Sequence record: NC_004629.1
Direction: 5' to 3' (one strand)
Length of the DNA stretch: 64,000 bases
Below are positions 3,672 through 55,522 of this stretch, piece after piece. The translations under genes were made by a program, and so were the position numbers. Below the pieces are notes generated by a model that had not been told where the DNA came from, made no database searches, and saw only the letters and a list, made by a program, of their open reading frames with translations. The first letter of the stretch is position 1. Each line of letters starts with the position of its first letter.

Positions 3672-4595
3672 AAGGGCGTCATCTGTAAGGTAATGGAAGA
3701 TGAAGATATGCCTATTGACGAAAATGGTAATAGGGCAGATCTAATTATCTTTGGTGGTTCAACCATGCGTCGTTCAAATTATGGTCGAATTTATGAACAT
3801 GGTTTTGGCGCAGCTGCACGGGATCTAGCTCAACGCCTACGCGTTGAAGCTGGATTAGATCGACATGCCAAACCAACCCAGCAACAACTAAATAGTGTAA
3901 TGGGCAACACACAATGGGTTGATTATGCATTTAAAGAACTATTAGGTTTCTATGAGATCATTGCTCCAACAATGCATAGTAAAATGATGGAACACCCAAA
4001 TCCAGCAGAACATGTTAAAACAGTACTAATGGATGGGTTCCCATATATCTACGCACCAGTTGATGATCCAGTGGATCTAATGGCAGCAGTCAACAAATTA
4101 ATTAATAGCGATAAGTATCGACCACACTATGGGAAGGTATCTTATCGAGATCAAGCTGGTAAGTGGGTAACAACTAAAGATAATGTCTTAATGGGTCCAC
4201 TTTACATGATGCTACTAGAAAAGATTGGTGAAGACTGGTCAGCAGCAGCATCTGTAAAAACACAACCATTTGGTCTACCTTCTAAGTTAAACAATGCTGA
4301 TAGGGCTAGCACTCCTGGTCGAGAAACAGCTATCCGGTCATTCGGTGAATCTGAAACTCGGTCATATAACTGTACAGTTGGTCCAGGTCCGACTGCTGAA
4401 ATCTTAGACCAAACTAATAACCCATTGGCGCATGCTGCGGTTATCGAGTCTTGGCTAACAGCAGAAAAACCTTCATCTGTACCAGTTGCAGTTGATCGTG
4501 AAAAGATTCCATTTGGTGGATCTCGCCCAGTAGCTATGTTTGATCACCTGCTTGAATGTAGTGGTATTGCATTAGAATATGCCCCTGATCATTGA
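3672..4595 (+). CDS. gp73: Non-virion RNA polymerase beta subunit C-terminal part, exon 2 (gp73)
   Basis: KGVICKVMEDEDMPIDENGNRADLII, GPLYMMLLEKI and IRSFGESE correspond to beta conserved regions H/I. Confidence 0.93.
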   Translation, partial: KGVICKVMEDEDMPIDENGNRADLIIFGGSTMRRSNYGRIYEHGFGAAARDLAQRLRVEAGLDRHAKPTQQQLNSVMGNTQWVDYAFKELLGFYEIIAPTMHSKMMEHPNPAEHVKTVLMDGFPYIYAPVDDPVDLMAAVNKLINSDKYRPHYGKVSYRDQAGKWVTTKDNVLMGPLYMMLLEKIGEDWSAAASVKTQPFGLPSKLNNADRASTPGRETAIRSFGESETRSYNCTVGPGPTAEILDQTNNPLAHAAVIESWLTAEKPSSVPVAVDREKIPFGGSRPVAMFDHLLECSGIALEYAPDH

Positions 4596-4625
4596 TCAGG
4601 GGTTTAATAATACAAGAGGTAAATA

Positions 4626-6659: not shown

Positions 6660-6679
6660 ACGTGGAGGACGTGAGGTTT

Positions 6680-6696
6680 GGGGAGCACTGCTCCCC
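6680..6696 (+). terminator. Hairpin between gp74 and the helicase gene
   Basis: GGGGAGC-ACT-GCTCCCC. Confidence 0.6.
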
Positions 6697-6717
6697 TTAC
6701 CGATCGTTGATTTTTTT

Positions 6718-8256
6718 ATGAAACCGATTCTTACAGCAGAACGATACACCCATGGTGTTCGTTTATCCGGTTACGATCGGGAAACATACTTAAAGATGAC
6801 TGGATATCTTAATAAACTGGTTTTAAAAGAACCTAAGAAGATACCTGGTCAACGCACCATAATGGAAATAAAGAAAAAATATTATGGTGAAACAGAAGAT
6901 GGTAAATCTGTATTCATCCATCGTGAATGTCTTCAAGAACTTATTAATTATCTGGCCGATAAGAATATACCATCTACTAGAATTGAAATTGTAGATATTC
7001 CTGTACCAACAGCTGTTAAAGTAGACTATACTTTATTTGAACATTATGTTCTAAGGGATTATCAGGAAACCATCCGCGAAGATATTCTAAGACCACATTT
7101 ACATTCAGCACGTGTTGATTTACAGACTGGTAAAGGTAAAACATTAACTAGTTTAGCTTCAGTTGCAGTAATGAAAGAACGTGGTGTTGTTATGATTCCA
7201 CCTAAATATTTCGGTATTTGGGAGAAAGCATTAAAAGAAACATTTGTTGGTTATGAAGATCAGCTAGGTATAAAATATTTAAAAGTATCTGGATCTGCTG
7301 AGTTACAGAATCTAATTAATCGCGGACTAGAGAATGATTTAGAGGGAGTTGAAATTATTCTCATTAGTTCTACAACATACCGTGCATATATCGATACTTT
7401 TGAACGATTAGGTGAAAAAATCGATGTAGTTGGATTTAATGTACCACCACCTAGATTCCATGAGGTTATTGGAGCAGGTTGGCAGATCAATGATGAGATT
7501 CAAGAAGATCCAGGATTAGTATTTCGTACTGATCTATATACCAATGTCAATAAACAAATCTATTTATCAGCTACTCCATACACTGGTAATCAGTTTGTTA
7601 CTAAAATGATTGATGTCATGCTACCTGCTACTACAAAGTGTAGGTTACCTGCATATGACTCATACATCAATGTTATTGGCTTGTTATATAGTGAACCAAC
7701 TATTAAACCTAAGGACTATTTAACTCCATTTAAAAATACATATAACCACGCTCGTTATGAAACAGTAATGATGAAGAACCCTAGGCGACTAGACTTCTAT
7801 CTAAAGATGGTTAAACGTATTGTAGATGGCGTTTATATAAAGGATCGTATTGAAGGTCAGAAATGTTTGCTATTATGCGCGACTGTAAACTTTATCGATG
7901 TACTGACAGATTATCTTAAGAAACAATATCCAGATCTTCAGATTAATAGACATGTTTCGGGTAGTCCGTATGATAGATTAATGACTAATGATATCACTGT
8001 ATCAACTATTAAATCATCTGGTACTGGTGTTGATATTAGGAATTTAAGGGAAGTTATTCTATTACAAGCAACTGACTCTAAAAAGGACAGTATCCAAATT
8101 CTTGGACGACTAAGACCATTGAAGAACTGGCCTGATGTAATACCAAGGTTAACATTCATGGTTTGTAATAACATACCTCATCATTGCAGATACGCTAGAA
8201 ATAAAGAAAATCATTTCATGGGTAAAACTAAAAGTATGCGCATGATGCGTTTATAG
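6718..8256 (+). CDS. Superfamily 2 DNA/RNA helicase (gp75)
   Basis: LRDYQ, LQTGKGKT (Walker A), NDEIQE, LSATP, TIKSSGTGVDI, QILGRLR. ATG 6718 is preferred over the GTG at 6643. Confidence 0.88.
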   Translation: MKPILTAERYTHGVRLSGYDRETYLKMTGYLNKLVLKEPKKIPGQRTIMEIKKKYYGETEDGKSVFIHRECLQELINYLADKNIPSTRIEIVDIPVPTAVKVDYTLFEHYVLRDYQETIREDILRPHLHSARVDLQTGKGKTLTSLASVAVMKERGVVMIPPKYFGIWEKALKETFVGYEDQLGIKYLKVSGSAELQNLINRGLENDLEGVEIILISSTTYRAYIDTFERLGEKIDVVGFNVPPPRFHEVIGAGWQINDEIQEDPGLVFRTDLYTNVNKQIYLSATPYTGNQFVTKMIDVMLPATTKCRLPAYDSYINVIGLLYSEPTIKPKDYLTPFKNTYNHARYETVMMKNPRRLDFYLKMVKRIVDGVYIKDRIEGQKCLLLCATVNFIDVLTDYLKKQYPDLQINRHVSGSPYDRLMTNDITVSTIKSSGTGVDIRNLREVILLQATDSKKDSIQILGRLRPLKNWPDVIPRLTFMVCNNIPHHCRYARNKENHFMGKTKSMRMMRL

Positions 8257-29651: not shown

Positions 29652-30974
29652 ATGACTAATAATTCATTTAGTCATTCGGTCTTACTTGAATCAATCGACG
29701 GGGACAGCCCCGTCGATATGATCGCTACATGCGATGGATATCTAAAAGAATTATTGCCATCAATTGAAGATATTCAAAGTAGATTAGAATGCACTGAAAA
29801 AGACATTTTAGTTAAAACCTATACCGATGGCTTATTTCAAAAATATGCAGATAACCAAGATGTTGTTAGTGAACACATTCTAAAAACTGAGAATGTGTCA
29901 TTAGAAGACCTATCTAAGACAGCACGAAATACCTGGGATGAAATGAAAAAATCCCAAGCAAAGCATCGAGATGAGTTAAAAGAGTATGCACGTGTTATTA
30001 CACAAGGTAATCAACGTACTCTTGAACGAATAAACATGCTTTTAGAAAGAGCTGAAAATATTAAGCATGAGCCATTTAAGCAAGAATTAAAATTTAAAAA
30101 TACTAAACGATTTAGTATTGATGGTAAATTCGAACCGACTACAGTTGATCCGATACTCATGCAAGTTAACAACTTGATAGCTTTCTATGATAAATCCCTA
30201 CTCTTGTATATCCAATCTGTAGCGGATATCCTTAGGAAATTATCATTTGATGAAAAATGGACTGATAGAGCTGCACAAGACTTTAGTAAGTTTAATGTTA
30301 AGAACTGGATGAAGGGTGCAGTACCTATTAAGAAAGATGATAGATTTAGAGTAAGTTCTACAGTTTATCGTAGTATGCCAGTTCAAGGTAATAAGACTTT
30401 ATTTGGCGCAGGGCCAACTGAAACACAGACTGAAGAGATCAGGGATTGGGATTTTTTAGTAAATACTGTCCGTGATTTTGCCTTTAAGTTTTATACTATT
30501 CCTACTATGAAGGATGCACTTGAAGGTAACAATACCTTTAAGGTTAATGATACGAGTTCAATTGGAAGACGGTTAGTATTATTAAGCGAAATGGCTAAAC
30601 GTATAGATGCTAGAAAAGATTATGCAACTAAACTAGATTTTGAATTTGGTAGGTTAATGCAGTTAGCCGAGACTAATCGTCAACAAGCTGGTAGGATTCG
30701 GGCACAACAATCTAATATGCGAAATCGTCAAGCAAAAGTTCAAGATCCTGATGCACCTGATGGCATCCCTGCTATCTCAAATATCATTAATTCAATTACA
30801 TTAATGATCAATAATGTAAGTCGCGTTGTAACAGATTTTAGTAATGCTCTTGCTGGTTTAGTCAGAGTAATGGGTCGACTAGTATTCGTGACCGAGTTAG
30901 AATTAAAAGCTTACCAGCGTCCAATTCAAAGACCTACGCAAGAACAAGTAAATAATCCCTCCCAGGTAAGGTAA
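29652..30974 (+). CDS. Head protein (gp92)
   Basis: 440 aa, SLE motif after an acidic N-terminus. Confidence 0.7.
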   Translation: MTNNSFSHSVLLESIDGDSPVDMIATCDGYLKELLPSIEDIQSRLECTEKDILVKTYTDGLFQKYADNQDVVSEHILKTENVSLEDLSKTARNTWDEMKKSQAKHRDELKEYARVITQGNQRTLERINMLLERAENIKHEPFKQELKFKNTKRFSIDGKFEPTTVDPILMQVNNLIAFYDKSLLLYIQSVADILRKLSFDEKWTDRAAQDFSKFNVKNWMKGAVPIKKDDRFRVSSTVYRSMPVQGNKTLFGAGPTETQTEEIRDWDFLVNTVRDFAFKFYTIPTMKDALEGNNTFKVNDTSSIGRRLVLLSEMAKRIDARKDYATKLDFEFGRLMQLAETNRQQAGRIRAQQSNMRNRQAKVQDPDAPDGIPAISNIINSITLMINNVSRVVTDFSNALAGLVRVMGRLVFVTELELKAYQRPIQRPTQEQVNNPSQVR

Positions 30975-30979
30975 TTAAC

Positions 30980-32287
30980 ATGTCTCTACTTAAAATGCTA
31001 GACAAACTATCACTTGAATCAATTGAAGATCAAGGCACTACGATTCATGGTGATGTTGAATTAGTCGTTGAAAATAAAACTTCTGCTGATGTATCATCCG
31101 TTTTAGCAGAAGTAGATCAGATTGAAAATAATCCCGTAGAAGAAGTTCTTGATGCAGATGATGCTATTCAACCAACTGCATTAGATACTGAAGTAACTAT
31201 TGTTCAAGCTGAAGATGAATTAGGGCTAATTGAAGATGCTAAAGAAGCACTTGAAAAGTTCCAAGGTCTTTTACTTCAAGCTGGTGAAGATGGTATCTCT
31301 CGACAAGCAGCTGCCTTCATGCATGTTGGCATGGAATCAATCGATCGTATCCTAGGTATTGAAAAATCTGGACTCACTGCCGCGCTTGAGAATTACGATG
31401 CTTCTCCACGCAGCGCTATTCAGAAAGCAGCTGTTATCTCTCTTGAGGATCTCAAAGAGAAACTAAAAGAAGCAGGTAAGAAAGCTTTAGAGATTATCAA
31501 GAAAATTGTTGCAATGATAAAGCAGAAGATTAAAGATTTTAATCCTAAGCTGATTGCACTCGATATGCGTATTACTAAAACTATTGATGCTATTAAATCA
31601 CTCAAAGCCGGTGATCTAAAGAAAGAAGAGATTAAGTTCACTCCTTCTGAGTATATGGTATCTAGTAGTGGCTTTATTGCAAATAATCCGAAGACTATTG
31701 CAGACTTCATGACTGTATTCTCAACTCAGTATGTATCTGCTCTTAGGAAATATGGCGAACTTGGAGTACGTTATCTCAAAGGTGACAAGTCTATTGATAT
31801 TGATCAAGTCACCAGTGATTTACAAGCTAAGATGGCTGAAGATATTAATAAAGCCGTTGAGAAAGCTCCTGGTAATGTTAAGTTAGAAGTTACTTCTTCT
31901 AAGTCAGGTGTGAATAAGTGGGAAGTTGTTGAGGGTGATGGGGAAACGGATCTACATGAAGTTGAAGTTGATGTCCGTGCACCGAGTAAAATCTTAGCAC
32001 ATCTTAATATTCTTAAAGGTCTTGTTATTAAACTACAGGACTTTAATAAGATTGATTACAAGATTGCTGAGAATCTTGAAAAGGCCCTAGCTGATTGGAA
32101 TCCTGACGAAGCAGGCATGTCAAAAGAAACAGCGCGTGATGCACTGAATATTGGTGGTATTGATAATAGTGCACTAGTTAACTATATTGCTAAATGCATC
32201 GCTGCGCAGTATACATTTATTGTTAAACATGAATTAGCTGCGTACGGCAAAGAAACTTCTAAAGCACCTGAGAATGATGAGAAGTAA
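30980..32287 (+). CDS. Inner-body paralogue-family protein (gp93)
   Basis: GISRQAAAFMHVGMES...ALENY...ISLEDLKE block shared with gp94 and gp95. Confidence 0.8.
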   Translation: MSLLKMLDKLSLESIEDQGTTIHGDVELVVENKTSADVSSVLAEVDQIENNPVEEVLDADDAIQPTALDTEVTIVQAEDELGLIEDAKEALEKFQGLLLQAGEDGISRQAAAFMHVGMESIDRILGIEKSGLTAALENYDASPRSAIQKAAVISLEDLKEKLKEAGKKALEIIKKIVAMIKQKIKDFNPKLIALDMRITKTIDAIKSLKAGDLKKEEIKFTPSEYMVSSSGFIANNPKTIADFMTVFSTQYVSALRKYGELGVRYLKGDKSIDIDQVTSDLQAKMAEDINKAVEKAPGNVKLEVTSSKSGVNKWEVVEGDGETDLHEVEVDVRAPSKILAHLNILKGLVIKLQDFNKIDYKIAENLEKALADWNPDEAGMSKETARDALNIGGIDNSALVNYIAKCIAAQYTFIVKHELAAYGKETSKAPENDEK

Positions 32288-32290
32288 CAA

Positions 32291-32324
32291 ACATAATGAG
32301 GAACCCTTCGGGGTTCCTCTTATG
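32291..32324 (+). terminator. ACATAA-hairpin-TTATG element
   Basis: GAGGAACCC-TTCG-GGGTTCCTC. Confidence 0.85.
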
Positions 32325-32356
32325 CTATGTAATTAAGTATTCTTGAGGAATTGTAA

Positions 32357-33874
32357 ATGAACTTAAATAAGTTACTTGATAGTTTAGAAGGTTATGGTGT
32401 TGTCGAAGTAAAAGAAAAAGTCGCGAAAGCCAAACTAAAGCACGCTGCTACAGACGACAAGCAAATATCTAAAGAACCAGAAGAAGCTGCCAAATTAATT
32501 GATGAATTACCAAATGATGTAAAAGCAACTAATAATGGGTTAGATGTTGAAGAAGCACATAAACCTAATATCCATTGGAAATCAGATCGTGGTTTAGTTA
32601 CTGAAGTTGATTCATTTGGTAAAACATACGTCGCATCAGAAGAATATCCAGCATCACCCCATGATACCCGAGAAAGTCCTGATAATAGACCTACACCAGT
32701 GGATGGTAAAGATTTAGATAGTGATGATGATCATTTAAATATCTTTGCGTATGATACACCTCCATCTCAAAACATGACATATCAGCTAAATCAATTACTG
32801 CATGCGCGTACTAGTTTAGAATGTTTTATAGATTTATTAAATACCGCTGGTGATAGAGGTATTACTAAACAATCAGCTGCTTTTATGCACGTTACATTAG
32901 AATCAATTGATAAGCTTATCGGCTTTGAAAAGATTAGTATTGAAGATTTTAATGCAACCCCTAGCAGCGCTATGCGTTTTGTAAATATTTCTCAAGAAGA
33001 AATAAAAGAACGTATTGAAAGTATAGGTAAAAAGATACTTGCTTTAATAGTCCATGTTATTGAACAAGCTAAAGTAGCGGCACAGCGTGTACTAACTGGA
33101 ATCAAATCAGTTGAAGATAAAACTGATGAGTTAATTGAAAAAGCGAAAAGTTTAATCAATAAGCCAACTGTATCAAATGAAAGGGTAACACCTGATTTTG
33201 ATATGTCAATTAAAATTGACAATCCTAAAATGTTATTCATTGGTGATGAATTTGTTTTAGACGATTTAACTAATGAAACAAAAGTTAGTCAATTTCTAGC
33301 TAAAGAATGGCCAAATATAGCTAGATCAAACATTGATAAAGTAGTTAAATTAATTAAAGACTACGACTTAGAAGATAATGAACTAGATAAGTTTAAAGAG
33401 GCTTTTGAATTTATTGGTGAAGCTAATCAGTTAGATAAAGTAAAAGATACTTCTCTACCTGGTAATAGTAAACTTATATTCCAGAAAGATAAATATGCTC
33501 CACGACTTGGTGAAGATAAACATGGTGATGGTCCAGATACAATCACGATCGAGCCAAGGCCGCCTGTTGAAGTGCGTAAAACATTAGAAGTTAATAAAGA
33601 AGCTATTCGTCGTTTAGGTGATCTATTTAAAGCTGAAAAAGATGTCCTTGAACAACTGAAGAAGGTTGCACAGGGCATTGAGGACATGGAGCTACGTAGG
33701 TCTAAAGCTATTTGGAAAGGTGCTCGTGATGATGCAAATGAGATTATATCTTTAGTTAATGGCTTTATTACCGATATGTCACCAGAATACGCAACACTAA
33801 TTAGTTACCTATTACATATTGCAAAGCAACGAAATGCTGTTTGTAATATGGAATTAGAAAGATATGGCCAATAA
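32357..33874 (+). CDS. Inner-body paralogue-family protein (gp94)
   Basis: GITKQSAAFMHVTLES...ISQEEIKE block. Confidence 0.8.
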   Translation: MNLNKLLDSLEGYGVVEVKEKVAKAKLKHAATDDKQISKEPEEAAKLIDELPNDVKATNNGLDVEEAHKPNIHWKSDRGLVTEVDSFGKTYVASEEYPASPHDTRESPDNRPTPVDGKDLDSDDDHLNIFAYDTPPSQNMTYQLNQLLHARTSLECFIDLLNTAGDRGITKQSAAFMHVTLESIDKLIGFEKISIEDFNATPSSAMRFVNISQEEIKERIESIGKKILALIVHVIEQAKVAAQRVLTGIKSVEDKTDELIEKAKSLINKPTVSNERVTPDFDMSIKIDNPKMLFIGDEFVLDDLTNETKVSQFLAKEWPNIARSNIDKVVKLIKDYDLEDNELDKFKEAFEFIGEANQLDKVKDTSLPGNSKLIFQKDKYAPRLGEDKHGDGPDTITIEPRPPVEVRKTLEVNKEAIRRLGDLFKAEKDVLEQLKKVAQGIEDMELRRSKAIWKGARDDANEIISLVNGFITDMSPEYATLISYLLHIAKQRNAVCNMELERYGQ

Positions 33875-33961
33875 ATATATCTAAGTGTTCATTTTTATCT
33901 AAGTACCTAATTCTATGGTTTATTGTTAAACGCGCGCAAAGAAATTCCTTGAGGAAATAAC

Positions 33962-35605
33962 ATGACATTTAAACTCAATGAGTATCTAGATAGTCTAGAA
34001 GACTATACTGAGGTACCTATTCCTGAAACAGCAGTTGATAAAGTAGCAGCCATGACTAGTGGCGATTGTATTTCTGAAGACGCTGTACCTGAAAATACTA
34101 TTCAAGATGTGACTGACAATAATGTTGGTGTAACACCAACTGCACCAGTGGATGCAGATACCACTATTGTTAATACTCCTAATAATGGCGTTATTGTTGA
34201 GACTCCAGCTGCTACTCTAGTTGAACAACCAGCTGTACCAGTTACCGTAGTTGAAACAGATGTAGTAACAGAAGTACCCCCTATTCCTGAACAACCTAAT
34301 ATTGCTGTTGAAACAGTTATTCCAGCAGGTGCCGAAGGAGAGGAACCACAAGGTGGTGAAACAGTAACTCAGCAAATCGCTGATCAGGCTGCCAAAGATA
34401 GTTCTATTCCACTAGCGCATAATGGCGTGGTGCCACAGATCGCTGTTGCAGTGGATATGGATAAACCTACTGATTTCATGGACATTGGTAATGCACAAGT
34501 AGTTACTACAGCAGTGCAAGATATTAATCAAGGTCTAAATACCGCATATGCCCTAGAGTCGATTAAAGCTCTTGTTCGACAAGCTGGTATTAATGGTATC
34601 AGTCAAAGTACAGCTGCATTTATTCATTCTGCACTCTTACCACATCGTCATGTACTTGGTGATAATACTTTAACTAGCTCATTAGAAAACTATACGACTG
34701 GTGGTAAAAGTCATTTATATCCAGTTAAGATTTCAACTGAGGATATTAAAGAGTTAAGTCGTAAGGCGCTTGCTTATATCAAGAAAGCTATTGCTAAACT
34801 ACGTGAAATTATTAGCCACGTATGGGATAGTCTTAAGAATAGTGTACCGCGTGTGAGCGTAAAAGTTGATGAACTCATTTTAGCTATCCAAAATGCTAAG
34901 TTTGAAAATATACCCAGTGAATTAACGGTTCCTGTTAAAAATGGTGGACCCGTATTTGCTAATGGTAAATTCATTCAGCCTTCAGCTAACGTTGGATATG
35001 GCCCTATCGTTAAATGGATGGCATCTGTATATGCAAAAGACTATGCCACCTACCTAACGAATATTGGTACTGTGCTTAAAGCTTGGGATCCAGAGCGTAA
35101 TGATGCTAGTGAACTAGTTGAGAAGATGGACAAACTTCAAGATGGACCTCTCAAACACTACGCTAGTACATCTAACACTTTACCGGGTAATAAGCTTGTA
35201 ACTACGACTGCTACTCAAGTATATCTAACTAATGATGAGACAGCCGCAGAACCTGGCACTGAAGTGACTTTAAAGAACTTTGATAAGAGTCAAGCTAAGA
35301 AAGAAGCAGTAGCTCTACGTAATCTGGTTGATGATGCAGCTGATGTTATCACTGGCGGACGGAACATTGTTAAAGCCATTAAGCAACTTGAAGATGATGT
35401 TGATCAACTTTCACGGAAACTAGAGAGTGATAAAATCGACGATGTTTCTAAAGAACAGATCGAAGAAGTATCACGTAAGGTAGCATCTATTATTACAGAT
35501 AGTGCACCTAAACATGACTCCATTATTCGTGAAGCAATGCGTTACGCAAATACTGCAACTGGACTTTATAATAGTGTAATTAACACTAAATTCCAAGCAG
35601 AATAA
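33962..35605 (+). CDS. Inner-body paralogue-family protein (gp95)
   Basis: Acidic P/T/V-rich propeptide; GISQSTAAFIHS...SLENY...ISTEDIKE. Confidence 0.8.
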   Translation: MTFKLNEYLDSLEDYTEVPIPETAVDKVAAMTSGDCISEDAVPENTIQDVTDNNVGVTPTAPVDADTTIVNTPNNGVIVETPAATLVEQPAVPVTVVETDVVTEVPPIPEQPNIAVETVIPAGAEGEEPQGGETVTQQIADQAAKDSSIPLAHNGVVPQIAVAVDMDKPTDFMDIGNAQVVTTAVQDINQGLNTAYALESIKALVRQAGINGISQSTAAFIHSALLPHRHVLGDNTLTSSLENYTTGGKSHLYPVKISTEDIKELSRKALAYIKKAIAKLREIISHVWDSLKNSVPRVSVKVDELILAIQNAKFENIPSELTVPVKNGGPVFANGKFIQPSANVGYGPIVKWMASVYAKDYATYLTNIGTVLKAWDPERNDASELVEKMDKLQDGPLKHYASTSNTLPGNKLVTTTATQVYLTNDETAAEPGTEVTLKNFDKSQAKKEAVALRNLVDDAADVITGGRNIVKAIKQLEDDVDQLSRKLESDKIDDVSKEQIEEVSRKVASIITDSAPKHDSIIREAMRYANTATGLYNSVINTKFQAE

Positions 35606-35617
35606 TGATAAGTGACG

Positions 35618-35653
35618 ACATATCGACGGGGCTCGGAAGAGTCCCGTCTTATG
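35618..35653 (+). terminator. ACATA-hairpin-TTATG element
   Basis: GACGGGGCTC-GGAA-GAGTCCCGTC. Confidence 0.8.
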
Positions 35654-35666
35654 TTAGGAGTTAGCA

Positions 35667-36782
35667 ATGGAATTAATTGATATTTATAAAGATACCCCAG
35701 ATGAAATGATTATTGATCTTGATGAACCTAAAAGACTTGCAGATTTATTATCAGGCGATGAAGCATTAGCTAGGCGAGTGATGGATCTATTAGGCGGTAT
35801 GGAAGATTATAATCAGATCCAAGGGGTTATCAAAGAATTAGAGGATGTTGTATCTACTGAAGATATTAGTGATACTATTAAACATGTTATTGATCGAGTT
35901 ATAAAACTATTTGTTACCACTATTGAGAAACTGATGGATAGTGGAGTAGTGCTAGCAGCTACTGCTGAATATGTTGCAATTCGAGCAGAAAACTTACGAG
36001 TTAACAGTCGTGCTAGAACTCGTAAAAATAAGAATCCTACATTCCTAATTACAACTCGTATTCAGAACTTAAGTGTTAGATATAAACCTATTACCAATAG
36101 TGCTAATTTGTTATCTCACTTACGCGTATTGGAGACAGTAGTTGATGGGTATATTAATGGATTAGACAATGTGATTCTAAGGCCAGCTAATATCATACCT
36201 TCGTATATGAATCCAAATGCTAGTCCAGATGCTTTAGCAGAACTACTATTAAATAGTGCCCCAACTAAAATAACCACACCATCTGTTTATCGCGATCAAG
36301 GTAATCGATTTGTATCATTGCATTTGCTAGGTAATCATCAAATTGTAATTAACTATAATCCCGATAAGAATGCAAGTGCTTATGATCAGTGTAGGGATAT
36401 TTCTTCACGGTTAGTTCCATCTGAAGAAACCCCTAGACCACTACCAGTCGAAATAGAATTTGAACATTTCAACCATCAAGTTACTGAAAGTATTATTGAT
36501 CGAGTTGTTAAGGTAGTTGATAAGATCAATCGTGCAAATGCTGCATCAATGCGTACTCGTCGAAATGAACGGTTAAGGACTCTTAAAGGTGCATTAATCA
36601 GGTTTAGAGATGAACTAACACGTGCTCGTAATGAAGGGCGACCTGATAGAGAAATACAAGAACTTGTTTCATTGGTAGAAACATATGTTGATTGGTTGGC
36701 TATTCCTTATCACGACCTATTTAAATTAACATGTCGTAATTTGACTGCCATACTCAATGTATGCGATGAAAATCTAAAGTAA
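35667..36782 (+). CDS. Head protein (gp96)
   Basis: 371 aa; GME/STE motifs near the N-terminus. Confidence 0.7.
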   Translation: MELIDIYKDTPDEMIIDLDEPKRLADLLSGDEALARRVMDLLGGMEDYNQIQGVIKELEDVVSTEDISDTIKHVIDRVIKLFVTTIEKLMDSGVVLAATAEYVAIRAENLRVNSRARTRKNKNPTFLITTRIQNLSVRYKPITNSANLLSHLRVLETVVDGYINGLDNVILRPANIIPSYMNPNASPDALAELLLNSAPTKITTPSVYRDQGNRFVSLHLLGNHQIVINYNPDKNASAYDQCRDISSRLVPSEETPRPLPVEIEFEHFNHQVTESIIDRVVKVVDKINRANAASMRTRRNERLRTLKGALIRFRDELTRARNEGRPDREIQELVSLVETYVDWLAIPYHDLFKLTCRNLTAILNVCDENLK

Positions 36783-36881
36783 GATTCCAGCGCAATATTT
36801 TGAATGTTAACGTTCGTCGCTTGGAGTTATGACTAAGACGAATAGCATAACTCATAAACTCTGTACAGAAGGTATATTAAC

Positions 36882-39332
36882 ATGATGGTAAATATTCACA
36901 AATATGTAGCCAGCCTTGAGAACCAAGATGGTACGGCTGTGGAACAGGATGTATCCAAAGTCGAGACATCTGTTAAAGATGATCATGAACTAGTTCAAGA
37001 TTTAAAGAAAGATAATGATGCATCTGCAACTATTGAGAATGAAACTGTTAAAACAGATACTGATATTATCTCTGCTGAAGAACATGAAGAAACAGCACAT
37101 GCTGCTGATAAGTCAGCAGTAATTGTTGAAGAAGTTGTACCAGAAGAAACTGTTGTTGAGGAAAGTATTCCTGAACCGCTAGCTACCACTAGTGTCGAAG
37201 AAGGCGAAGAAGCAGTTAAAGTTGCTGAAGCTGAAATCGCTGAAGAAATCGGTACAATTTCTGAAGGCGGTAAAGAGGTTTTAGATTCAACCACTGAAAT
37301 TATTGAAGCTGCACAAGATGCGGCTGATGATACTGAACTAGTGCCTGTTGCAGAAGCACCTGGTGAAACAGCAGTGGAATTAACCCCCACTGAAGAAACC
37401 CCACTTGGTGACGAAACTCCGCCACCTGCACCACTATCTGAAGAACTCCCAGCTGGTGATGAACCCGTGTCATCTACCATGGATACACTACCAGATGAAG
37501 TGTTAGATGCTGGTGAAGTTGTAAGTGAAGCAGTTCCTGGTATCGATGATGATGTGACACCGGAAGAAGCCGGTGCTGAACAGACAACTGCTGATGAAAG
37601 TTCCAATGAATCACCTGATGTAGAGATTACTGAAACTGAAGAAGTCGATATTACTGAACCAGCTGTAGCTGATGCTGAAACAGAAGTTGTTGAAACCGTG
37701 GAAGACACGCCGGATACAACTGATAGTGAAGTAGCTGAAGTAGTAGAGACGGAATCTGAAAGTATCCCTGCTGAAGCTGAACCGGATGAAATCGTAGCAG
37801 TTGATGAAGAAGTAGCTGTAACTGATCCAATTGTAGAAGAAGCCGCCGAAACAGCAGAAGTAGCTGAAGAAGGCTTAAGCGAATTGGAAGAAGTTCGGGA
37901 TGAAGCTGAAGAAGAATTAACTAATGATGACAGTGATTCTACTGATGTATTAATTAATGAAGCTGAAACTGAAGAAACAGTTGCTGAAACTGAAACAGCA
38001 TCTACTATTGCTGAACCAACAATTGAAGAAGGTGCAGTTGAAGATGATAGTGAAACAATTGTCGCTGAAGCTGATGATGATGTTTCAGAAGATGACATCG
38101 AAGAAAAGTTAGCTGAAGGTGAAATTGATATTCCAGATGTCGATGTAGAAGTAACTGAAGATGATGTTGAAGAAGCAGATGAAGCTGCTGATGAGGCAGT
38201 TGCTGAAGCTGATGATCTTGAAGATGAAGTTGAGGACAGTAAGAAGACCATTGGTCAATTACTTGAAGAGCAGGCATCAAATGAATCAATGCTTGAGATT
38301 CTGCATTATGGACTAGAGCATAAACAGTATAGCCCTCAGTTCATCGTTCATGCTAATAGCTGCTTAGAACGTCTACACAATGCCTTTGATGTCTATTCAC
38401 CTGGTATTCCAGCAATGGAAGATTATGGTTATGGTAATCTAGAAGATTACTATAAGGCGATGGTTACTTCACTAGAATCATTTAATAGCACTATTGGTAA
38501 GTTTGTTCGAAATATTATCGACAATATTGCTGAAGGTGCAAATGCATCCATCCATGTTAAAGCTAACCAAAAAGAACTCGCCGCAGCTAATACTAAAGCT
38601 GACCAACTTCTAGTTAAGCTTAAAGACACTGATAATTTTGAAAATAAAGAAATCAAAATTAATGGTATTCTAAAAGGTGATGATAATCTAGTACGCGGTG
38701 TTGCTGGAGAAGTTCGTCGTATTAGCGATATTATTAACAAATGCTTCAAAATCGATGGTGAATACATCGAACGTTTAGTTGGTCACCTATCAACTGCTAT
38801 TGAAGCTGATAGTGAAGAAGCTATTGATAAGGCTCTAGAAGAAGCAACTAAATTAGAAGTACCTGTTAAGAAATATCCTGAGAGTTCATTTATCAGTGGA
38901 AAACTAGAAGGTAGTTTTACCTTCGAGAAGTCTGGCCGTGATGTAACTGGTCGCACTAGTAAAGATATTGAACGATTAGCTGCTATTGCACTTCCAACTG
39001 GTGAATGGGGTGCTACCGGTACTGCTACTGCTAAAGTTAGCCGTAAGGACGTTACTGAACTAATGAAACTTTCTAAAGTTCTAATTGGTCTTGGTAATGC
39101 CTCTCTAAAAGTTAGCGGTAACCGCGGTGTACGTCGTCTTGACCAAGCTAACCGTGATATCTCTAAAGTGGCTAGCATGGATAGTAAAGCCGGTAAAAAG
39201 AAAGTCCGGCAACTAGCTAGTGCAGTATGGGAAGTTGTTGGCCAATCGGCTGAAAACCACACCGTTCTAGTTGATTACATTGTAGCTCTTACCAATGCAA
39301 TTAACACTGCTGTGAATCGTGCCATTAAGTAA
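36882..39332 (+). CDS. Inner-body protein with very long acidic propeptide (gp97)
   Basis: 816 aa; about 460 aa of E/D/A/V/T-rich sequence, then AME/SLE sites and a helical domain. Confidence 0.8.
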   Translation: MMVNIHKYVASLENQDGTAVEQDVSKVETSVKDDHELVQDLKKDNDASATIENETVKTDTDIISAEEHEETAHAADKSAVIVEEVVPEETVVEESIPEPLATTSVEEGEEAVKVAEAEIAEEIGTISEGGKEVLDSTTEIIEAAQDAADDTELVPVAEAPGETAVELTPTEETPLGDETPPPAPLSEELPAGDEPVSSTMDTLPDEVLDAGEVVSEAVPGIDDDVTPEEAGAEQTTADESSNESPDVEITETEEVDITEPAVADAETEVVETVEDTPDTTDSEVAEVVETESESIPAEAEPDEIVAVDEEVAVTDPIVEEAAETAEVAEEGLSELEEVRDEAEEELTNDDSDSTDVLINEAETEETVAETETASTIAEPTIEEGAVEDDSETIVAEADDDVSEDDIEEKLAEGEIDIPDVDVEVTEDDVEEADEAADEAVAEADDLEDEVEDSKKTIGQLLEEQASNESMLEILHYGLEHKQYSPQFIVHANSCLERLHNAFDVYSPGIPAMEDYGYGNLEDYYKAMVTSLESFNSTIGKFVRNIIDNIAEGANASIHVKANQKELAAANTKADQLLVKLKDTDNFENKEIKINGILKGDDNLVRGVAGEVRRISDIINKCFKIDGEYIERLVGHLSTAIEADSEEAIDKALEEATKLEVPVKKYPESSFISGKLEGSFTFEKSGRDVTGRTSKDIERLAAIALPTGEWGATGTATAKVSRKDVTELMKLSKVLIGLGNASLKVSGNRGVRRLDQANRDISKVASMDSKAGKKKVRQLASAVWEVVGQSAENHTVLVDYIVALTNAINTAVNRAIK

Positions 39333-39335
39333 CAA

Positions 39336-39369
39336 ACATAACGGGGAGCCTTCATGGCTCCCTTTTATG
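39336..39369 (+). terminator. ACATAA-hairpin-TTTTATG element
   Basis: GGGAGCC-TTCAT-GGCTCCC. Confidence 0.8.
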
Positions 39370-39397
39370 CTGTTAGACCATGATCTTATGATCTTAA

Positions 39398-42453
<3,056 letters not shown>

Positions 42454-51373: not shown

Positions 51374-51531
51374 CTATGAAACGATCACCAGGTTATTTTA
51401 AAAGAGTAGTAAAAGAACTAACTGAGCGAGAGAATATTATACATCAGAAAGTTCTTAAATACATCAATGATAATCCGAATATTTCTTATAAAGAAGCACG
51501 TCAGATAGTAACTAAGGAGATTATAAAGTGA
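51370..51531 (+). CDS. 53-aa basic hypothetical protein
   Basis: ATGA overlap with the upstream stop and GTGA overlap with the downstream start. Confidence 0.6.
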   Translation: MTMKRSPGYFKRVVKELTERENIIHQKVLKYINDNPNISYKEARQIVTKEIIK

Positions 51532-51740
51532 CTATTTCAATTCCTGCATCAGTTCGTGGTGAGTTTGGAATTTATTACAAAAATAATAAGAATCTTCGAC
51601 TGGGTCAGGCATGGCATAATTACATGCGTCTTGAAAATATCCAAAATGAAATGGATAAAGAATGGGCTGATAAACTCTGGAATGCTTCTGATAAAGAAGC
51701 AGCTGATATGGTTGATGAAGCCACTAATTGGACTATGTAA
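51528..51740 (+). CDS. Small phage protein with LRLGQAW motif
   Basis: 70 aa, AAGGAG RBS. Confidence 0.7.
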   Translation: MTISIPASVRGEFGIYYKNNKNLRLGQAWHNYMRLENIQNEMDKEWADKLWNASDKEAADMVDEATNWTM

Positions 51741-51779
51741 CTAAACAATATTTACTATAGTAAATAAGGAGAAATACAA

Positions 51780-51923
51780 ATGACTAATGAAGAAATTATC
51801 GTAGATGAAAGTAAATGGGCCGATGACAGCGAGATGGTTGGCTGTAAACCAGTTGATCTGTTTATTGATTTTTACTGGGTAGAGCCCACTCATCATACTC
51901 AAGAAGGAAAAGAGGATAATTAA
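51780..51923 (+). CDS. 47-aa acidic hypothetical protein
   Basis: AAGGAG RBS, ATG 51780, TAA 51921-51923. Confidence 0.6.
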   Translation: MTNEEIIVDESKWADDSEMVGCKPVDLFIDFYWVEPTHHTQEGKEDN

Positions 51924-51924
51924 C

Positions 51925-52200
51925 ATGGGTGAATATACACAGAATGGTATTCGTCATTTTCGTCCGGATGATACCGAAGATACCTTTTATATCTTGGGTG
52001 ATTGTTATGTAGCCAATACTATCGCCGATATTATCGAGATGGCAACTAAGAAATGGGGTGATGGTATTACTCTTGATATGATTAATATCAGTACTGAATA
52101 TATTCATACAAGTTGTCTAGGGTATGATGAGTACGACCCCAGCGATTACAGTAATTATTTATGCATCTCTCGTGTTAGGGAAACATCGCTGGTTAAATAA
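51925..52200 (+). CDS. Hypothetical phage protein
   Basis: 91 aa; EYIHTSCLGYDEYDPSDY motif. Confidence 0.75.
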   Translation: MGEYTQNGIRHFRPDDTEDTFYILGDCYVANTIADIIEMATKKWGDGITLDMINISTEYIHTSCLGYDEYDPSDYSNYLCISRVRETSLVK

Positions 52201-52207
52201 ATTAACG

Positions 52208-52242
52208 ACATAATCCCTCTCCTTCGGGAGAGGGCATTTATT
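52208..52242 (+). terminator. Terminator ending the accessory island
   Basis: ACATAA-CCCTCTCC-TTCG-GGAGAGGG. Confidence 0.8.
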
Positions 52243-52269
52243 CAGTTAAACTTTTAAGAATAAAAGAAT

Positions 52270-52301
52270 TAGCCCTACTGTTACAGCAGTAGGGCTATAT
52301 G
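52270..52301 (+). promoter_or_regulatory. 11-bp inverted repeat directly followed by TATG (candidate late promoter)
   Basis: TAGCCCTACTG-TTACAG-CAGTAGGGCTA-TATG. Confidence 0.5.
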
Positions 52302-52365
52302 CCGTTGAGTAAAAAATACTCAACATTTTCGCCCAAGTGGGCTTGGATTAACAAGAGGAACAATC

Positions 52366-52671
52366 ATGTTAATTCCAGTTACCGCTAACAATGTTAGCCC
52401 TGACCTGCACAGAATGCAGGAAGTAGGTTTCTTTTTCAAGAGACCCGATGGATCAACCCATAGCATGTCGGTTGCGAAAACGCAAGCCGATAATGTTATC
52501 CAATGTCGAGATCGTAGAGGTAACTTCATTGGTTATTGGGCTGGCCCTACAATAGGATACGTCAACAACGCAGGTTTAGCCGTATCCATCAACCCCTTCG
52601 ACAATTTCATAGTAACATACACTGACATGGATCAGAAGAAGTTCTATGTAACCGAAAGGAGAAGCCTATGA
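52366..52671 (+). CDS. Hypothetical beta-rich protein, stand-alone unit
   Basis: 101 aa, GAGGA RBS, hairpins on both sides. Confidence 0.7.
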   Translation: MLIPVTANNVSPDLHRMQEVGFFFKRPDGSTHSMSVAKTQADNVIQCRDRRGNFIGYWAGPTIGYVNNAGLAVSINPFDNFIVTYTDMDQKKFYVTERRSL

Positions 52672-52679
52672 TAAACAAC

Positions 52680-52720
52680 CCCTCTCCTAAAGGAGAGGGA
52701 CTTATCTGAATTCTTTTTTT
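52680..52720 (+). terminator. Intrinsic terminator
   Basis: CCCTCTCC-TAAA-GGAGAGGG with a downstream T-tract. Confidence 0.7.
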
Positions 52721-52724
52721 GTTT

Positions 52725-53280
52725 AAGTGAGAGCCGCCCGCTAAAGCGGCTCCCAAGTGGAGTTAAGTCTCCCGCTAAAGAGAAACTCCAGAATACATGG
52801 GGTAGCGACTCCTCATGTAGATATCCTAATTAATCTCTTTAGCTAGTAATCAATACCCGTTATCACTCGTTGATAATTGATTTGTTTATTAACTAATTTG
52901 ACTTAATCAGAATGATCAATACATATTGTTAATAATCTAGTATATTATTACCAGTATCATTGAGTAATACTGGTAATCAAATATTACTCATGAATCTTAC
53001 CTAATGTGGAACTGAGGAATCGGATCGCCCCGTAGGGGCTTTTATTTCATAATAAACTATACCGAAGGTATATCCTTATTCTAATAATAAACAATATTAG
53101 CATTATTCTAATAGCGTTAGCTAATACATACTGTCTCCCTAAAAGGAGACACAGTATAGATTATATTTTTTTTAATTAAAAATAATAAGTCTAGAGATAG
53201 ACTTTCTTTATGCCTTTAATACCTTCTAATTTGCTCTATAATCGATTTTATTCGTTATTCACTAGCATATTAGCCATACG
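52725..53280. ncRNA. Non-coding hairpin array; candidate structured RNA or DNA cis-element
   Basis: No credible ORF; at least 8 inverted repeats (see findings). Confidence 0.4.
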
Positions 53281-53311
53281 ACATAAAAGCCCTCCTATGA
53301 GGGCTTAAATG
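53281..53311 (-). terminator. Terminator for the minus-strand genes
   Basis: AAGCCCTC-CTAT-GAGGGCTT. Confidence 0.7.
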
Positions 53312-53313
53312 CT

Positions 53314-53550
53314 TTATTTTTCATTAGTCGGATATAGGAGTACAATAGACTCTGCGCATACTTTAATAACTTGGATATTTTCACTGTCATTATTTTTTGA
53401 TTGTTTATTTTTAACGCAGTATTCAAATTGTTGGGATTTGAGTTTATATACGTTATTGTTCTCTTCTCCCAGTATTCCTCCAAATACCAATCCTAGGATA
53501 AATATTAATAAACCACCAATAAAGATAATATAAACATTACCATAGTACAT
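53314..53550 (-). CDS. Small N-terminal-TM protein
   Basis: VYIIFIGGLLIFILGLVFGGILG. Confidence 0.7.
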   Translation of the reverse strand: MYYGNVYIIFIGGLLIFILGLVFGGILGEENNNVYKLKSQQFEYCVKNKQSKNNDSENIQVIKVCAESIVLLYPTNEK

Positions 53551-53551
53551 A

Positions 53552-53920
53552 TTACATTAACTCCTTTACATCATCTGGAATAGATTCACACCGATCTAAA
53601 TCCCAGTAGATGTGTGTATAGTGATCTTGGTTTACGATACTGATAAAATCCCCATTAGGATCGGGTAATGGTTTACGGATAATATCAACGTAAATAGTGT
53701 AATATAAATAAAGATCACTGATGAGTTCATCAATGTTTAAATTATTACCCTCTGCATATTTCCCATATTTAAAATAATGGGCTTCTTCTGCTACAGCATA
53801 ACGGATTTTATCGTAATTTTGTGATGCGGCATATACACGTGCAAATAGAGGGCGATTAAACTTTCTACATTCACTAATATTTTTTCTTAAAGTATTTACT
53901 AAATTATCAATTGCACTCAT
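53552..53920 (-). CDS. Hypothetical protein
   Basis: 122 aa with AATAGG RBS on the minus strand. Confidence 0.7.
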   Translation of the reverse strand: MSAIDNLVNTLRKNISECRKFNRPLFARVYAASQNYDKIRYAVAEEAHYFKYGKYAEGNNLNIDELISDLYLYYTIYVDIIRKPLPDPNGDFISIVNQDHYTHIYWDLDRCESIPDDVKELM

Positions 53921-53945
53921 TTAGATTACCTATTAAAATTATAGT

Positions 53946-53971
53946 GCTCTCCCCGAAGGGAGAGCTTTATG
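53946..53971 (-). terminator. Hairpin downstream of dnaB
   Basis: Minus strand CATAAA-GCTCTCCC-TTCG-GGGAGAGC. Confidence 0.8.
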
Positions 53972-53974
53972 TTG

Positions 53975-55522
53975 TTAATATCCCCAGTCATCTCCACCAG
54001 TGGCTTGCATATTGCTAAGACTTGGTACAAAGTCCATGTAATTGTTTTCTTCTTTATCGATATCCCATCTAATACCACCAATACGGTCTGGATCAAACGG
54101 CATAACAAAATAGTGATGCTTACTATCACTTACAACGTTACGGTGTTTACCACGTTGTACGGTTAGATAATACTTACCACTTACTTTAACAATGTGGAAG
54201 AAGAATTCCAGATCAGGTTCTTGTCCAAGTCGGCGACAACCGTCATAGTAACCTTTGTTAGCAACTTGTTTAACAAAGTCTTCTGGTGGGATATTATCCC
54301 TGATTAGTTCTAATGCCTGAGAACTTAACTGATGCGGACTAAAGAATGTGATACCACGTGGTGCAGTATAGTTACGCATTCGCCTAAATAGGAGACGAAC
54401 GTCATCACCTGCTACACTGGTCACTAATCCAGTTTTAGGCAACATGTTTAGATAATCTACGCAGAGATATTGTAGTTCATAACCACGTGCTTGATATGTA
54501 TCTAGGTAGTTAACTAAACCAGCAATCGTAAATTCAGTTGGGTCAAAACGATACATTACTGGTTCAAAACCATTTTCACGGAGACGAGCTGATACATATT
54601 CAGCTGCTTCAGCTTTACTAATAGAACTACGATCTACCTTGATACCTGTTTCATTTTCGTAAATATACTCATAAATGAAAATAAGGTTATCCGGAATCTC
54701 ATTCTCAAGAGTAATAAACATTACTAATGGTTTCTTATTGATATCACGCATGTATGGTTTATTAAATAGACACACATGGCAAAATAGACTCATAGAAACG
54801 CCAGATTTATATTGATGTTGTAGGCCACCACCGATAATAAATTCACCACGTTTTAATGCACCCAGATCACCAAGCATCCTGTTAAAACCTTTCCATCCAG
54901 TACGGAAAGCACCATTTGGGGAAAGAATAGTTTTAGCTTCCTCAAAGAAGCCTTCAATAGAATCTAAATTACCAAAATCAAGTGCACCCATTTCAGCTGG
55001 GTGTTTCTCTTCAGCACGCGCGCGAATATATGGGTCAGCTCTGGTTGCCATTTCATTAATGATTGCCGGAATATCAGCAGAGCCTCTATTGAAAAGAATT
55101 TTTGATGAACATTCTTTTACAATAGCTTTTACCTTCTCATCAGCTAAGTAGCTATTTAGATCACGACGATATGAAGTTACACGCATGGCTAATGCCATGC
55201 CATTTGGAAATTCTTCTTCTACTGCATTTTTAACAGCATCGTATAGATAACTTTCTTCACGACAACATACTTGTAGTGATTGTAATACCTGTTGGGTAGC
55301 TGGGAAATATGCTTTCTGTTTCTTATTTAGATCCACTAGTAGATTACGAAGATCTAAAAATGTTTGTCGACCATGATCTACATCTAATGTACCACCCTTA
55401 TCATTTAGAGTATCAAGAATCTCAGTAACCAATTCATTGGATGGTTCCACTGGAGAATCTTCTCGATTTTCTAAACATAATAGAGTGATACATGAAACGA
55501 GTAATTGTTTTGGACTTGACAT
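53975..55522 (-). CDS. dnaB: DnaB-like replicative helicase (gp118)
   Basis: FRTGWKGFNRMLG, variant Walker A GGLQHQYKS, FITLEN, CVDYLNML, HQLS, QRGKHR. Confidence 0.9.
   Translation of the reverse strand: MSSPKQLLVSCITLLCLENREDSPVEPSNELVTEILDTLNDKGGTLDVDHGRQTFLDLRNLLVDLNKKQKAYFPATQQVLQSLQVCCREESYLYDAVKNAVEEEFPNGMALAMRVTSYRRDLNSYLADEKVKAIVKECSSKILFNRGSADIPAIINEMATRADPYIRARAEEKHPAEMGALDFGNLDSIEGFFEEAKTILSPNGAFRTGWKGFNRMLGDLGALKRGEFIIGGGLQHQYKSGVSMSLFCHVCLFNKPYMRDINKKPLVMFITLENEIPDNLIFIYEYIYENETGIKVDRSSISKAEAAEYVSARLRENGFEPVMYRFDPTEFTIAGLVNYLDTYQARGYELQYLCVDYLNMLPKTGLVTSVAGDDVRLLFRRMRNYTAPRGITFFSPHQLSSQALELIRDNIPPEDFVKQVANKGYYDGCRRLGQEPDLEFFFHIVKVSGKYYLTVQRGKHRNVVSDSKHHYFVMPFDPDRIGGIRWDIDKEENNYMDFVPSLSNMQATGGDDWGY

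Follow-up and report, generated by a model that had tools for sequence, protein, structure and literature searches.

A known leader RNA, a silent spacer and a conserved hairpin module share the largest intergenic space of a 64-kb window of phage phiKZ

Short non-coding RNAs (ncRNAs) derived from leaders of longer transcripts have been described in bacteriophage phiKZ. Gradient sequencing found an RNA of about 180 nt that represents the first part of the 5' untranslated region (5' UTR) of p40 (Gerovac et al. 2021, mBio, PMC8545117). This RNA, 5'UTR_p40, sediments in light fractions, and a Northern blot shows a band of about 180 nt together with longer species (Gerovac et al. 2021, PMC8545117). 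In the transcript map of Putzeys et al. 2024 (Microlife, PMC10914365), transcription starts at P060 (114,922, minus strand) and a 3' end, T053, lies at 114,725 on the same strand, defining TU089, which has 197 nt and contains no gene. P060 is common to TU089 and TU088, a 715-nt unit that continues through p40 and p39 to T051 at 114,207 on the minus strand (Putzeys et al. 2024, PMC10914365). Here, we describe the hairpin-rich region in which P060 and this RNA are located, positions 52725 to 53280 of a 64,000-nt stretch of sequence record NC_004629.1 (hereafter the window). The window is 100% identical to phiKZ (AF399011 / NC_004629), and a window coordinate is the phiKZ coordinate minus 62000; the region studied is phiKZ 114,725-115,280.

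Other features of phiKZ transcription are also relevant to this region. The middle-promoter motif is TACT about 22 nt upstream of the start. The intrinsic terminators of phiKZ combine a GC-rich hairpin with a TTAT just after it, a motif derived from 61 terminator regions, and bidirectional termination regions occur where genes converge (Putzeys et al. 2024, PMC10914365).

Two kinds of systems outside phiKZ serve as further comparisons. The T4 origins oriF (uvsY) and oriG (34) are R-loop origins, in which a middle-mode promoter is combined with a downstream AT-rich unwinding element; its non-coding transcript remains hybridised there and primes DNA synthesis. Inversions of hairpin loops at short inverted repeats are found in chloroplast non-coding DNA, and template-switch mutation takes place at quasi-palindromes.

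The main element of the region is already published, as an ncRNA mapped by two groups. The region as a whole is probably a composite regulatory spacer between two minus-strand transcription units. What is new here is modest and comprises a hairpin module found in three genera, inversions of hairpin loops, and weak evidence for coding in p39 and p40.

The leader RNA and the p40/p39 transcript

Published work establishes where the short RNA starts, on which strand it lies, how long it is and that it is in excess, as well as both 3' ends; the present analysis supports all of these points. The RNA, the stem-loops (SL1 to SL4) of its predicted fold and the other parts of the longer transcript are as follows.

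52725-52922, minus strand: non-coding leader RNA (TU089, '5'UTR_p40'), 197 nt, from P060 to T053; published and seen in RNA runs
52820-52917, minus strand: SL1 of the predicted fold, with the apex TTATCA/TGATAA at 52860-52876
52794-52819, minus strand: SL2 of the predicted fold
52758-52790, minus strand: SL3 of the predicted fold
52728-52755, minus strand: SL4 of the predicted fold
52677-52702 (52680-52699), no strand assigned: GC-rich hairpin of the terminator type between T053 and the p40 start, with TTAT tails on both strands; from the terminator scan
52207-52724, minus strand: rest of TU088 (715 nt in total), with PHIKZ117.2/p40 (52533-52628) and PHIKZ117.1/p39 (52320-52529), ending at T051

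The Northern probe JVO-18831 is exactly the plus-strand letters 52856-52884. Since the probe matches the plus strand, the detected RNA is on the minus strand. The initial annotation, made from the letters of the window, had named a structured ncRNA as one candidate. The candidate holds for the left third of the region (52725-52922, minus strand), where the RNA was already published, but not for the remainder, which has zero coverage in three of four RNA runs.

These public runs, X1, X9, X10 and X13 (X13 being Nanopore), were placed on 52150-53650 as Logan contigs, which are unstranded and give flat depths only. Contigs extend from 52199 to 52917 in X9 and from 52229 to 52906 in X10, and contig ends fall near the P060 start, at 52906-52918, in three runs. 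Word depth in X13 is 30,660-39,643 over 52762-52914, 13,131 over 52711-52761 and 3,393-7,903 over 52303-52659, and the short RNA is thus 5-10 times deeper than 52303-52659 in this run. The p40 start codon follows T053 at a distance of 97 nt. The short form is less than 250 nt and is commoner than the read-through form. No minus-strand open reading frame (ORF) of at least 20 amino acids (aa) is present within 52725-52922, as was also reported by the authors of the RNA. With its shared start, early 3' end, excess and lack of an ORF, the RNA fits the class of 5'UTR-derived short ncRNAs that arise by premature termination (Putzeys et al. 2024).

The minus strand, read from 52922 to 52725, is predicted to fold into four stem-loops with an energy of -65.1 kcal/mol, compared with -42.1 +/- 4.0 for shuffles (z -5.7). 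The plus-strand counterpart folds more weakly (-56.4 kcal/mol, z -4.7) because several G-U pairs of the minus-strand fold would be mismatches on the plus strand. Four stems of the initial annotation are the stem-loops of the published RNA. SL4 has 12 bp, and the 3' end of the RNA at 52725 follows it directly. SL3 and SL4 share a motif, CCCGCTAAAG / CUUUAGCGGG, that is found nowhere else in the genome; CCCGCTAAAG was considered as a genome-wide element and rejected, being a local duplication unique to this locus. Among 13 phiKZ-like genomes, the short RNA varies at 7 sites, of which 4 are unpaired, 1 changes a G-U pair to G-C, and 2 break outer pairs of SL3.

Hairpins are not confined to the short RNA. 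Every stem listed in the initial annotation is present at, or within a few bases of, the position given there, as for 52731-52752, 52759-52789, 52794-52819 and 52947-52977. The remaining stems are TTATCA/TGATAA at 52860-52876, GCCCC-GTA-GGGGC at 53027-53039, TATACC-GAA-GGTATA at 53058-53072, and a stem at 53129-53158. Nine non-overlapping perfect stems of at least 6 bp lie in 52725-53280, compared with 2.18 +/- 1.36 in dinucleotide shuffles, none of which reached nine (0/300). The most stem-dense 350 nt of the whole window begins at 52851 and contains 8 perfect stems of at least 6 bp (mean 1.55, standard deviation 1.28). A terminator scan of 51500-54500 found 11 sites, where 1.4 are expected, and 7 of the 38 hairpin+TTAT signals of the window lie inside the annotated gap (52629-53313), which makes up 1.07% of its length. 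The excess of hairpins is genuine and has strong statistical support.

The gap is also free of ORFs, as had been claimed, with none of at least 20 aa on the transcribed strand. Scans of the gap for tRNA and tmRNA found none. The sole match in the window to Rfam 15 at gathering thresholds is a group I intron (RF00028, 87.6 bits) at 3391-3617 on the plus strand, at PHIKZ072/072.1, and a permissive scan of 52550-53350 gave a best E of 0.28, far below threshold. Spliced reads for the predicted phiKZ introns were not seen under the conditions of Putzeys et al. 2024 (PMC10914365). A sigma-70 promoter scan yielded fewer sites than shuffles; phiKZ transcription is independent of the host transcription apparatus.

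At 685 bp, the annotated gap exceeds every other annotated intergenic space of the window; the runner-up, of 472 bp, is located at 629-1100 between PHIKZ070 and PHIKZ070.1. In phiKZ records, the gap is flanked by minus-strand genes on either side, PHIKZ117.2 (52533-52628; locus tag PHIKZ_p40) and PHIKZ117.3 (53314-53550), beyond which lie PHIKZ117.4 and the DnaB-like helicase PHIKZ118. The initial annotation had placed the array at a transcription convergence point. This is contradicted by the strand of both annotated neighbours and by the converging 3' ends, which map to 52207 (minus) and 52239 (plus). In the long-read transcript map, these ends are T051 at 114,207 (minus) and T052 at 114,239 (plus), and plus-strand reads reach at most 114,302 (Putzeys et al. 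2024, PMC10914365). The convergence claim evidently came from taking the plus-strand 101-aa ORF at 52366-52671 as the left neighbour. Annotations of 52320-52671 are in conflict: phiKZ records give the minus-strand genes 117.1 and 117.2, and most records of relatives give the overlapping plus-strand 101-aa ORF. GC content in 52320-52671 is 44-47%, compared with about 37% for the window. In a phiKZ study using transposon insertion sequencing (TnSeq), each of 117.1, 117.2, 117.3 and 117.4 received insertions and the helicase gene had none, with counts given at the gene level.

This overlap gives rise to another reading of the transcript. The whole 715-nt RNA may be non-coding and antisense to the plus-strand ORF at 52366-52671 (the original PHIKZ117); the leader would then belong to a larger regulatory or antisense RNA as its 5' domain. 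We regard this as possible, although rather unlikely. Premature stops occur in p39 in 3 of 13 relatives, whereas all 13 keep an undamaged copy of the overlapping plus-strand ORF. Codon usage gives -0.13 bits per codon for p39 and -0.12 for p40, compared with +0.19 to +0.59 for neighbouring small genes, but the plus-strand ORF is also near zero (+0.05); codon usage typical of phiKZ is absent from all three frames. Both minus-strand starts lack a Shine-Dalgarno sequence, and the plus-strand ORF has AAGAGGAA 5 nt before its ATG; mapped plus-strand transcripts, however, end at 52239, with the longest read reaching 52302, and thus stop short of this ORF. No PHROG family includes p39 or p40. Nor does the plus-strand ORF have relatives outside phiKZ-like phages, as searches of 5.8 billion clustered proteins, 1.8 billion representatives, PHROGs and the ESM Atlas returned otherwise only noise. 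The interior, 52330-52670, folds with z -3.5 and -3.9 against shuffles, compared with -1.0 for a control coding stretch, but perfect hairpins are about as dense there as in the window on average. Substitution patterns cannot separate the two frames, the third codon positions of which coincide. On these signs, the coding status of p39 and p40 appears doubtful, and the weakness of their coding signs matters when a function is assigned to the leader RNA.

Promoter, silent spacer and conserved hairpin module

To the right of the short RNA, the region consists of its promoter, an AT-rich spacer, and the terminator of the helicase operon. The features of this part are listed below.

52923-52975, minus strand: promoter P060 of the p40/p39 unit, a 'middle promoter' first mapped by Wicke et al. 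2021, with its sequence listed by Putzeys et al.
52947-52977, no strand assigned: inverted repeat with perfect 11-bp arms separated by 9 nt, spanning -25 to -55 relative to the P060 start
about 53008-53095, no strand assigned: conserved hairpin module of about 88 bp, found with blastn and a covariance model in three genera
53027-53039, plus-strand reading: module hairpin hp1, followed by TTTTATTT
53041-53056, no strand assigned: hp2, the middle module hairpin
53058-53072, no strand assigned: hp3, followed by TCCTTATTCTAAT and, in the minus-strand reading, by GTTTATTAT
53129-53158 (core 53132-53151), no strand assigned: hairpin in the silent AT-rich spacer, its core found by the U-run terminator scan on the minus strand
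53164-53184, no strand assigned: AT-only palindrome of the silent spacer, from the stem scan
53187-53204, both strands: spacer hairpin with 2 GC pairs and a TTAT tail on either strand
53280-53311, minus strand: terminator of the helicase operon (PHIKZ118, 117.4, 117.3), with a hairpin at 53289-53304 followed by TTTTATGTC and the RNA 3' end at 53280

P060 fits the middle-promoter motif. Its TACT lies at 52939-52942, about 19-22 nt upstream of the start, and its TATG at 52922-52925 provides, with the G, the first base of the transcript. A search of the gap for the early-promoter core TGTATATTAC, taken from the published consensus, was negative. The plus-strand TATATTATTAC at 52941 was considered as an early promoter and set aside, as its resemblance is only loose.

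The inverted repeat upstream of P060 has invariant arms and a variable spacer. The spacer is CATTGAGTA in 8 of 13 phiKZ-like genomes and its exact reverse complement, TACTCAATG, in the other 5. An apparent cluster of substitutions at 52958-52966 is thus explained by inversion of the spacer. A second case is the hairpin at 52677-52702, the loop of which (52688-52691) is TAAA, its reverse complement TTTA, or TTCA among the 13 genomes, with a constant stem. Loop flips of this kind mark hairpin formation during DNA synthesis, and they show that the inverted repeats fold into hairpins in vivo. The orientation of the spacer across strains is out of step with the neighbouring polymorphism at 52978, a distribution that suggests recurrence or recombination. 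No report of loop inversion in phiKZ was found in the papers on phiKZ consulted for comparison. The palindrome may act as an operator. Apparent second places of this region in the genomes of relatives were rejected, as they are self-matches of the palindrome and generic terminators.

Between the promoter and the helicase operon, the DNA is nearly silent. X9, X10 and X13 show zero depth between 52966 and about 53270, and the published tables contain no transcript start or end between 114,923 and 115,942 (Putzeys et al. 2024, PMC10914365). Folding of 52919-53281 against shuffles gives z -3.4 and -3.3, with the two strands about equal. This fits DNA-level palindromes or two-way terminators and not a strand-specific RNA.

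Adapter-joined contig ends in X1 are located at 53280 and 52207, the latter being the published T051. Because the same 'TTATGTC' position gives 52207, 53280 is taken as the 3' end of the helicase operon. The terminator at this end is kept in SL2, OMKO1 and ANB1, although the adjoining 117.3 is deleted there. The deletion in PHIKZ117.3 removes about 196 bp (window 53334-53546) in these three phages.

Several other stems match the terminator pattern. The stems at 52680-52699 (both strands) and 53287-53306 (minus strand) have 5-6 GC pairs, and those at 53058-53072 and 53187-53204 have 2, with a TTAT tail on both strands. The hairpin at 52677-52702 resembles terminators elsewhere in the genome. 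The hairpin at 53027-53039 was detected by the U-run scan on the plus strand; its 5-bp stem is below the 6-bp limit of the TTAT scan, and its TTAT tail was read from the sequence. By this pattern, the spacer hairpins probably terminate transcription.

The module at 53008-53095 lies within the silent spacer. With the gap as a query, blastn matches 47 of 47 phiKZ-like records over the full length at 96.5-100% identity. In eight Pawinskivirus-like records, blastn matches only 58 nt of the gap (53035-53092), at about 90% identity. The match is at the syntenic spot, between a plus-strand operon and the minus-strand 117.4-like and helicase genes. This 58-nt core differs at 5 sites, 2 of which are in the hp2 loop and 2 of which swap an outer hp3 pair from T-A to A-T. 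Both groups retain all 15 scored module pairs, and in two of these pairs both partners have changed. The covariance model built from this block finds one further strong match, in PhiPA3 at 114,965-115,050 (E 5.5e-9). This match falls in an ORF-free space of 808 bp (114,453-115,260) that is flanked by gp128 on the plus strand and gp129 on the minus strand and lies downstream of the helicase operon. In PhiPA3, hp1, hp2 and the TCCTTATTC repeat are kept, and hp3 is swapped for an unrelated 7-bp hairpin in the same place. In phiKZ, a second copy of TTATTCTAATA is present at 53103-53113. Between converging operons, the module is kept with compensatory pair changes in Pawinskivirus and with one hairpin exchanged for another in PhiPA3.

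Both hp1 on the plus strand and hp3, or its replacement, on the minus strand fit the pattern of a hairpin followed by TTAT. The module may thus be a face-to-face bidirectional terminator that marks an ancestral convergence point. A pattern scan of IMG/VR for the module returned only a PA7-like contig, and no copies of the palindrome or the module were found elsewhere in the genome. In Psa21, the helicase of which is 59.5% identical, only 55 bp are present at this position; not all members of the family therefore have the long spacer.

Substitutions per 100 nt among the 13 genomes are 3.6 in the short RNA, 2.9 in the conserved module and 3.2 in 53097-53281, compared with 4.2-10.3 in the flanking genes. 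By this measure, constraint on the gap equals or exceeds that on the neighbouring genes.

The surroundings of the module differ between phages. ORF-free, hairpin-rich spaces with the module and two-strand hairpin+TTAT terminators lie downstream of the helicase operon in PS119XW (417 bp) and PhiPA3 (808 bp). In PhiPA3, an intervening segment with an endonuclease gene interrupts the helicase gene, and HPP-Temi has an inserted gene for a virion structural protein immediately to the right of the module. Gene gain and loss seem to concentrate at the flanks of the module. On the left side, window 52300-52343, the 3' end of p39 with the hairpin at 52304-52324, aligns with PS119XW, and the approximately 650 bp from there up to the module do not. 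This alignment suggests that a cassette has been replaced between two conserved anchors.

Origin and anchor readings

The initial annotation also named a replication origin as a candidate. In this reading, the region would be the replication origin of the phiKZ group, of the R-loop type, and P060, the ncRNA, the AT-rich spacer and the module would form a priming apparatus beside the helicase operon. We consider this very unlikely. A middle-type promoter does yield an abundant non-coding RNA here, and the helicase operon adjoins. The short RNA, however, is released and stable and is found in light fractions, not bound to DNA. GC content is 25-35% across 52775-53300, compared with about 37% for the window, and this stretch could serve as an AT-rich unwinding region; the point is weak, since such composition is typical of phiKZ promoter and intergenic DNA, and here too the AT-richness follows from the DNA being intergenic. 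In the cumulative GC skew there is a turn at about 52-53 kb, exactly at the change of coding strand, and similar dips occur at other minus-strand gene blocks; the switch of coding strand would explain the turn.

The whole gap is kept in 47 of 47 phiKZ-like records, whereas 117.3 is lost in some, and module-bearing ORF-free spaces occupy the same position in PS119XW and PhiPA3, but not in Psa21 with its 55 bp. Iteron-like arrays are absent; no repeat exceeds two copies, and the direct repeats found are two-copy ones of 11-17 nt. The window contains 3 copies of ATAATAAACWATA, where 1.07 are expected by chance. In the literature searched, no report of a phiKZ origin was found.

A packaging site or phage-nucleus anchor, with the module or the palindrome bound by a phage protein, is the least probable of the readings considered, and we give it hardly any weight. 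The palindrome arms are perfect and invariant, the module is symmetric and conserved across genera, and a helix-turn-helix gene, PHIKZ114, lies 1.6 kb away. Nothing, however, ties the palindrome or the module to a protein. Neither element is repeated elsewhere in the genome, and phiKZ is described as circularly permuted with arbitrary ends. There is no positive evidence for either the origin or the anchor reading, and the locus is a reasonable but unsupported origin candidate.

A composite regulatory spacer and its relation to known systems

The reading that we prefer is that of a composite regulatory spacer. Transcription of the helicase operon would end at the hairpin+TTAT terminator with its 3' end at 53280. 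The AT-rich spacer of about 300 bp, with hairpin+TTAT signals on two strands, would insulate the two units and stop polymerases arriving from either side. P060, preceded by the 11-bp palindrome, starts transcription at 52922. The first 197 nt would fold into the four stem-loops, and most transcripts end at 52725, giving an abundant and stable ncRNA. A minority read through the second terminator hairpin, p40 and p39 to 52207. In our best reading, the short RNA would be an attenuator-type leader, the stable product of which may also act in trans.

Several observations weigh against this reading. The 3' end at 52725 lacks a U-run after SL4, which is unusual for intrinsic termination; therefore, termination and 3' trimming back to a stable stem are indistinguishable. 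The variable sites of the short RNA, 7 in 13 genomes with 2 breaking SL3 pairs, are too few for covariation to judge its fold. A single X1 contig (52625-53309) spans the gap, pointing to some read-through RNA or to DNA carry-over. The spacer hairpins and the conserved module have no mapped 3' end, and their role as terminators rests on the sequence pattern, although ends may escape detection in a region that is nearly silent. Finally, identity of about 90% over 58 nt, in phages the helicases of which share 63% of residues, is more conservation than a terminator seems to need.

The finding is ordinary as it stands, a known ncRNA together with mostly terminator-like stems. The module, which is conserved in Phikzvirus, Pawinskivirus and PhiPA3 far above its surroundings, may be of use for work on nucleus-forming jumbo phages, as may the weak coding signs of p39 and p40 and the loop flips.

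The short RNA is the same molecule as 5'UTR_p40 of Gerovac 2021 and TU089, with the same start, 3' end, size (180-197 nt) and probe position. The published papers describe two stems, whereas the minimum-energy fold predicted here has four. The 360 bp upstream of P060 fall outside the treatment of Gerovac 2021 and Putzeys 2024. Compared with phiKZ-type terminators, the hairpins at 52677-52702 and 53282-53311 fit the combination of a GC-rich stem and a nearby TTAT, and those at 53027-53039 and 53058-53072 fit it more loosely. Unlike the published phiKZ terminator regions, the conserved module and the spacer hairpins have no mapped ends, and in phiKZ the module no longer lies between converging genes, because the p40/p39 unit is located to its left. 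As in oriF and oriG of T4, a middle-class promoter, a non-coding transcript and AT-rich DNA lie beside replication genes in phiKZ; unlike in T4, the phiKZ RNA is free and stable, and the analogy is a functional one only. The closest parallel to the variation at the palindrome is found in the loop inversions of chloroplast DNA and quasi-palindromes, as the spacer of phiKZ-like phages is likewise exactly reverse-complemented between unchanged arms in some strains.

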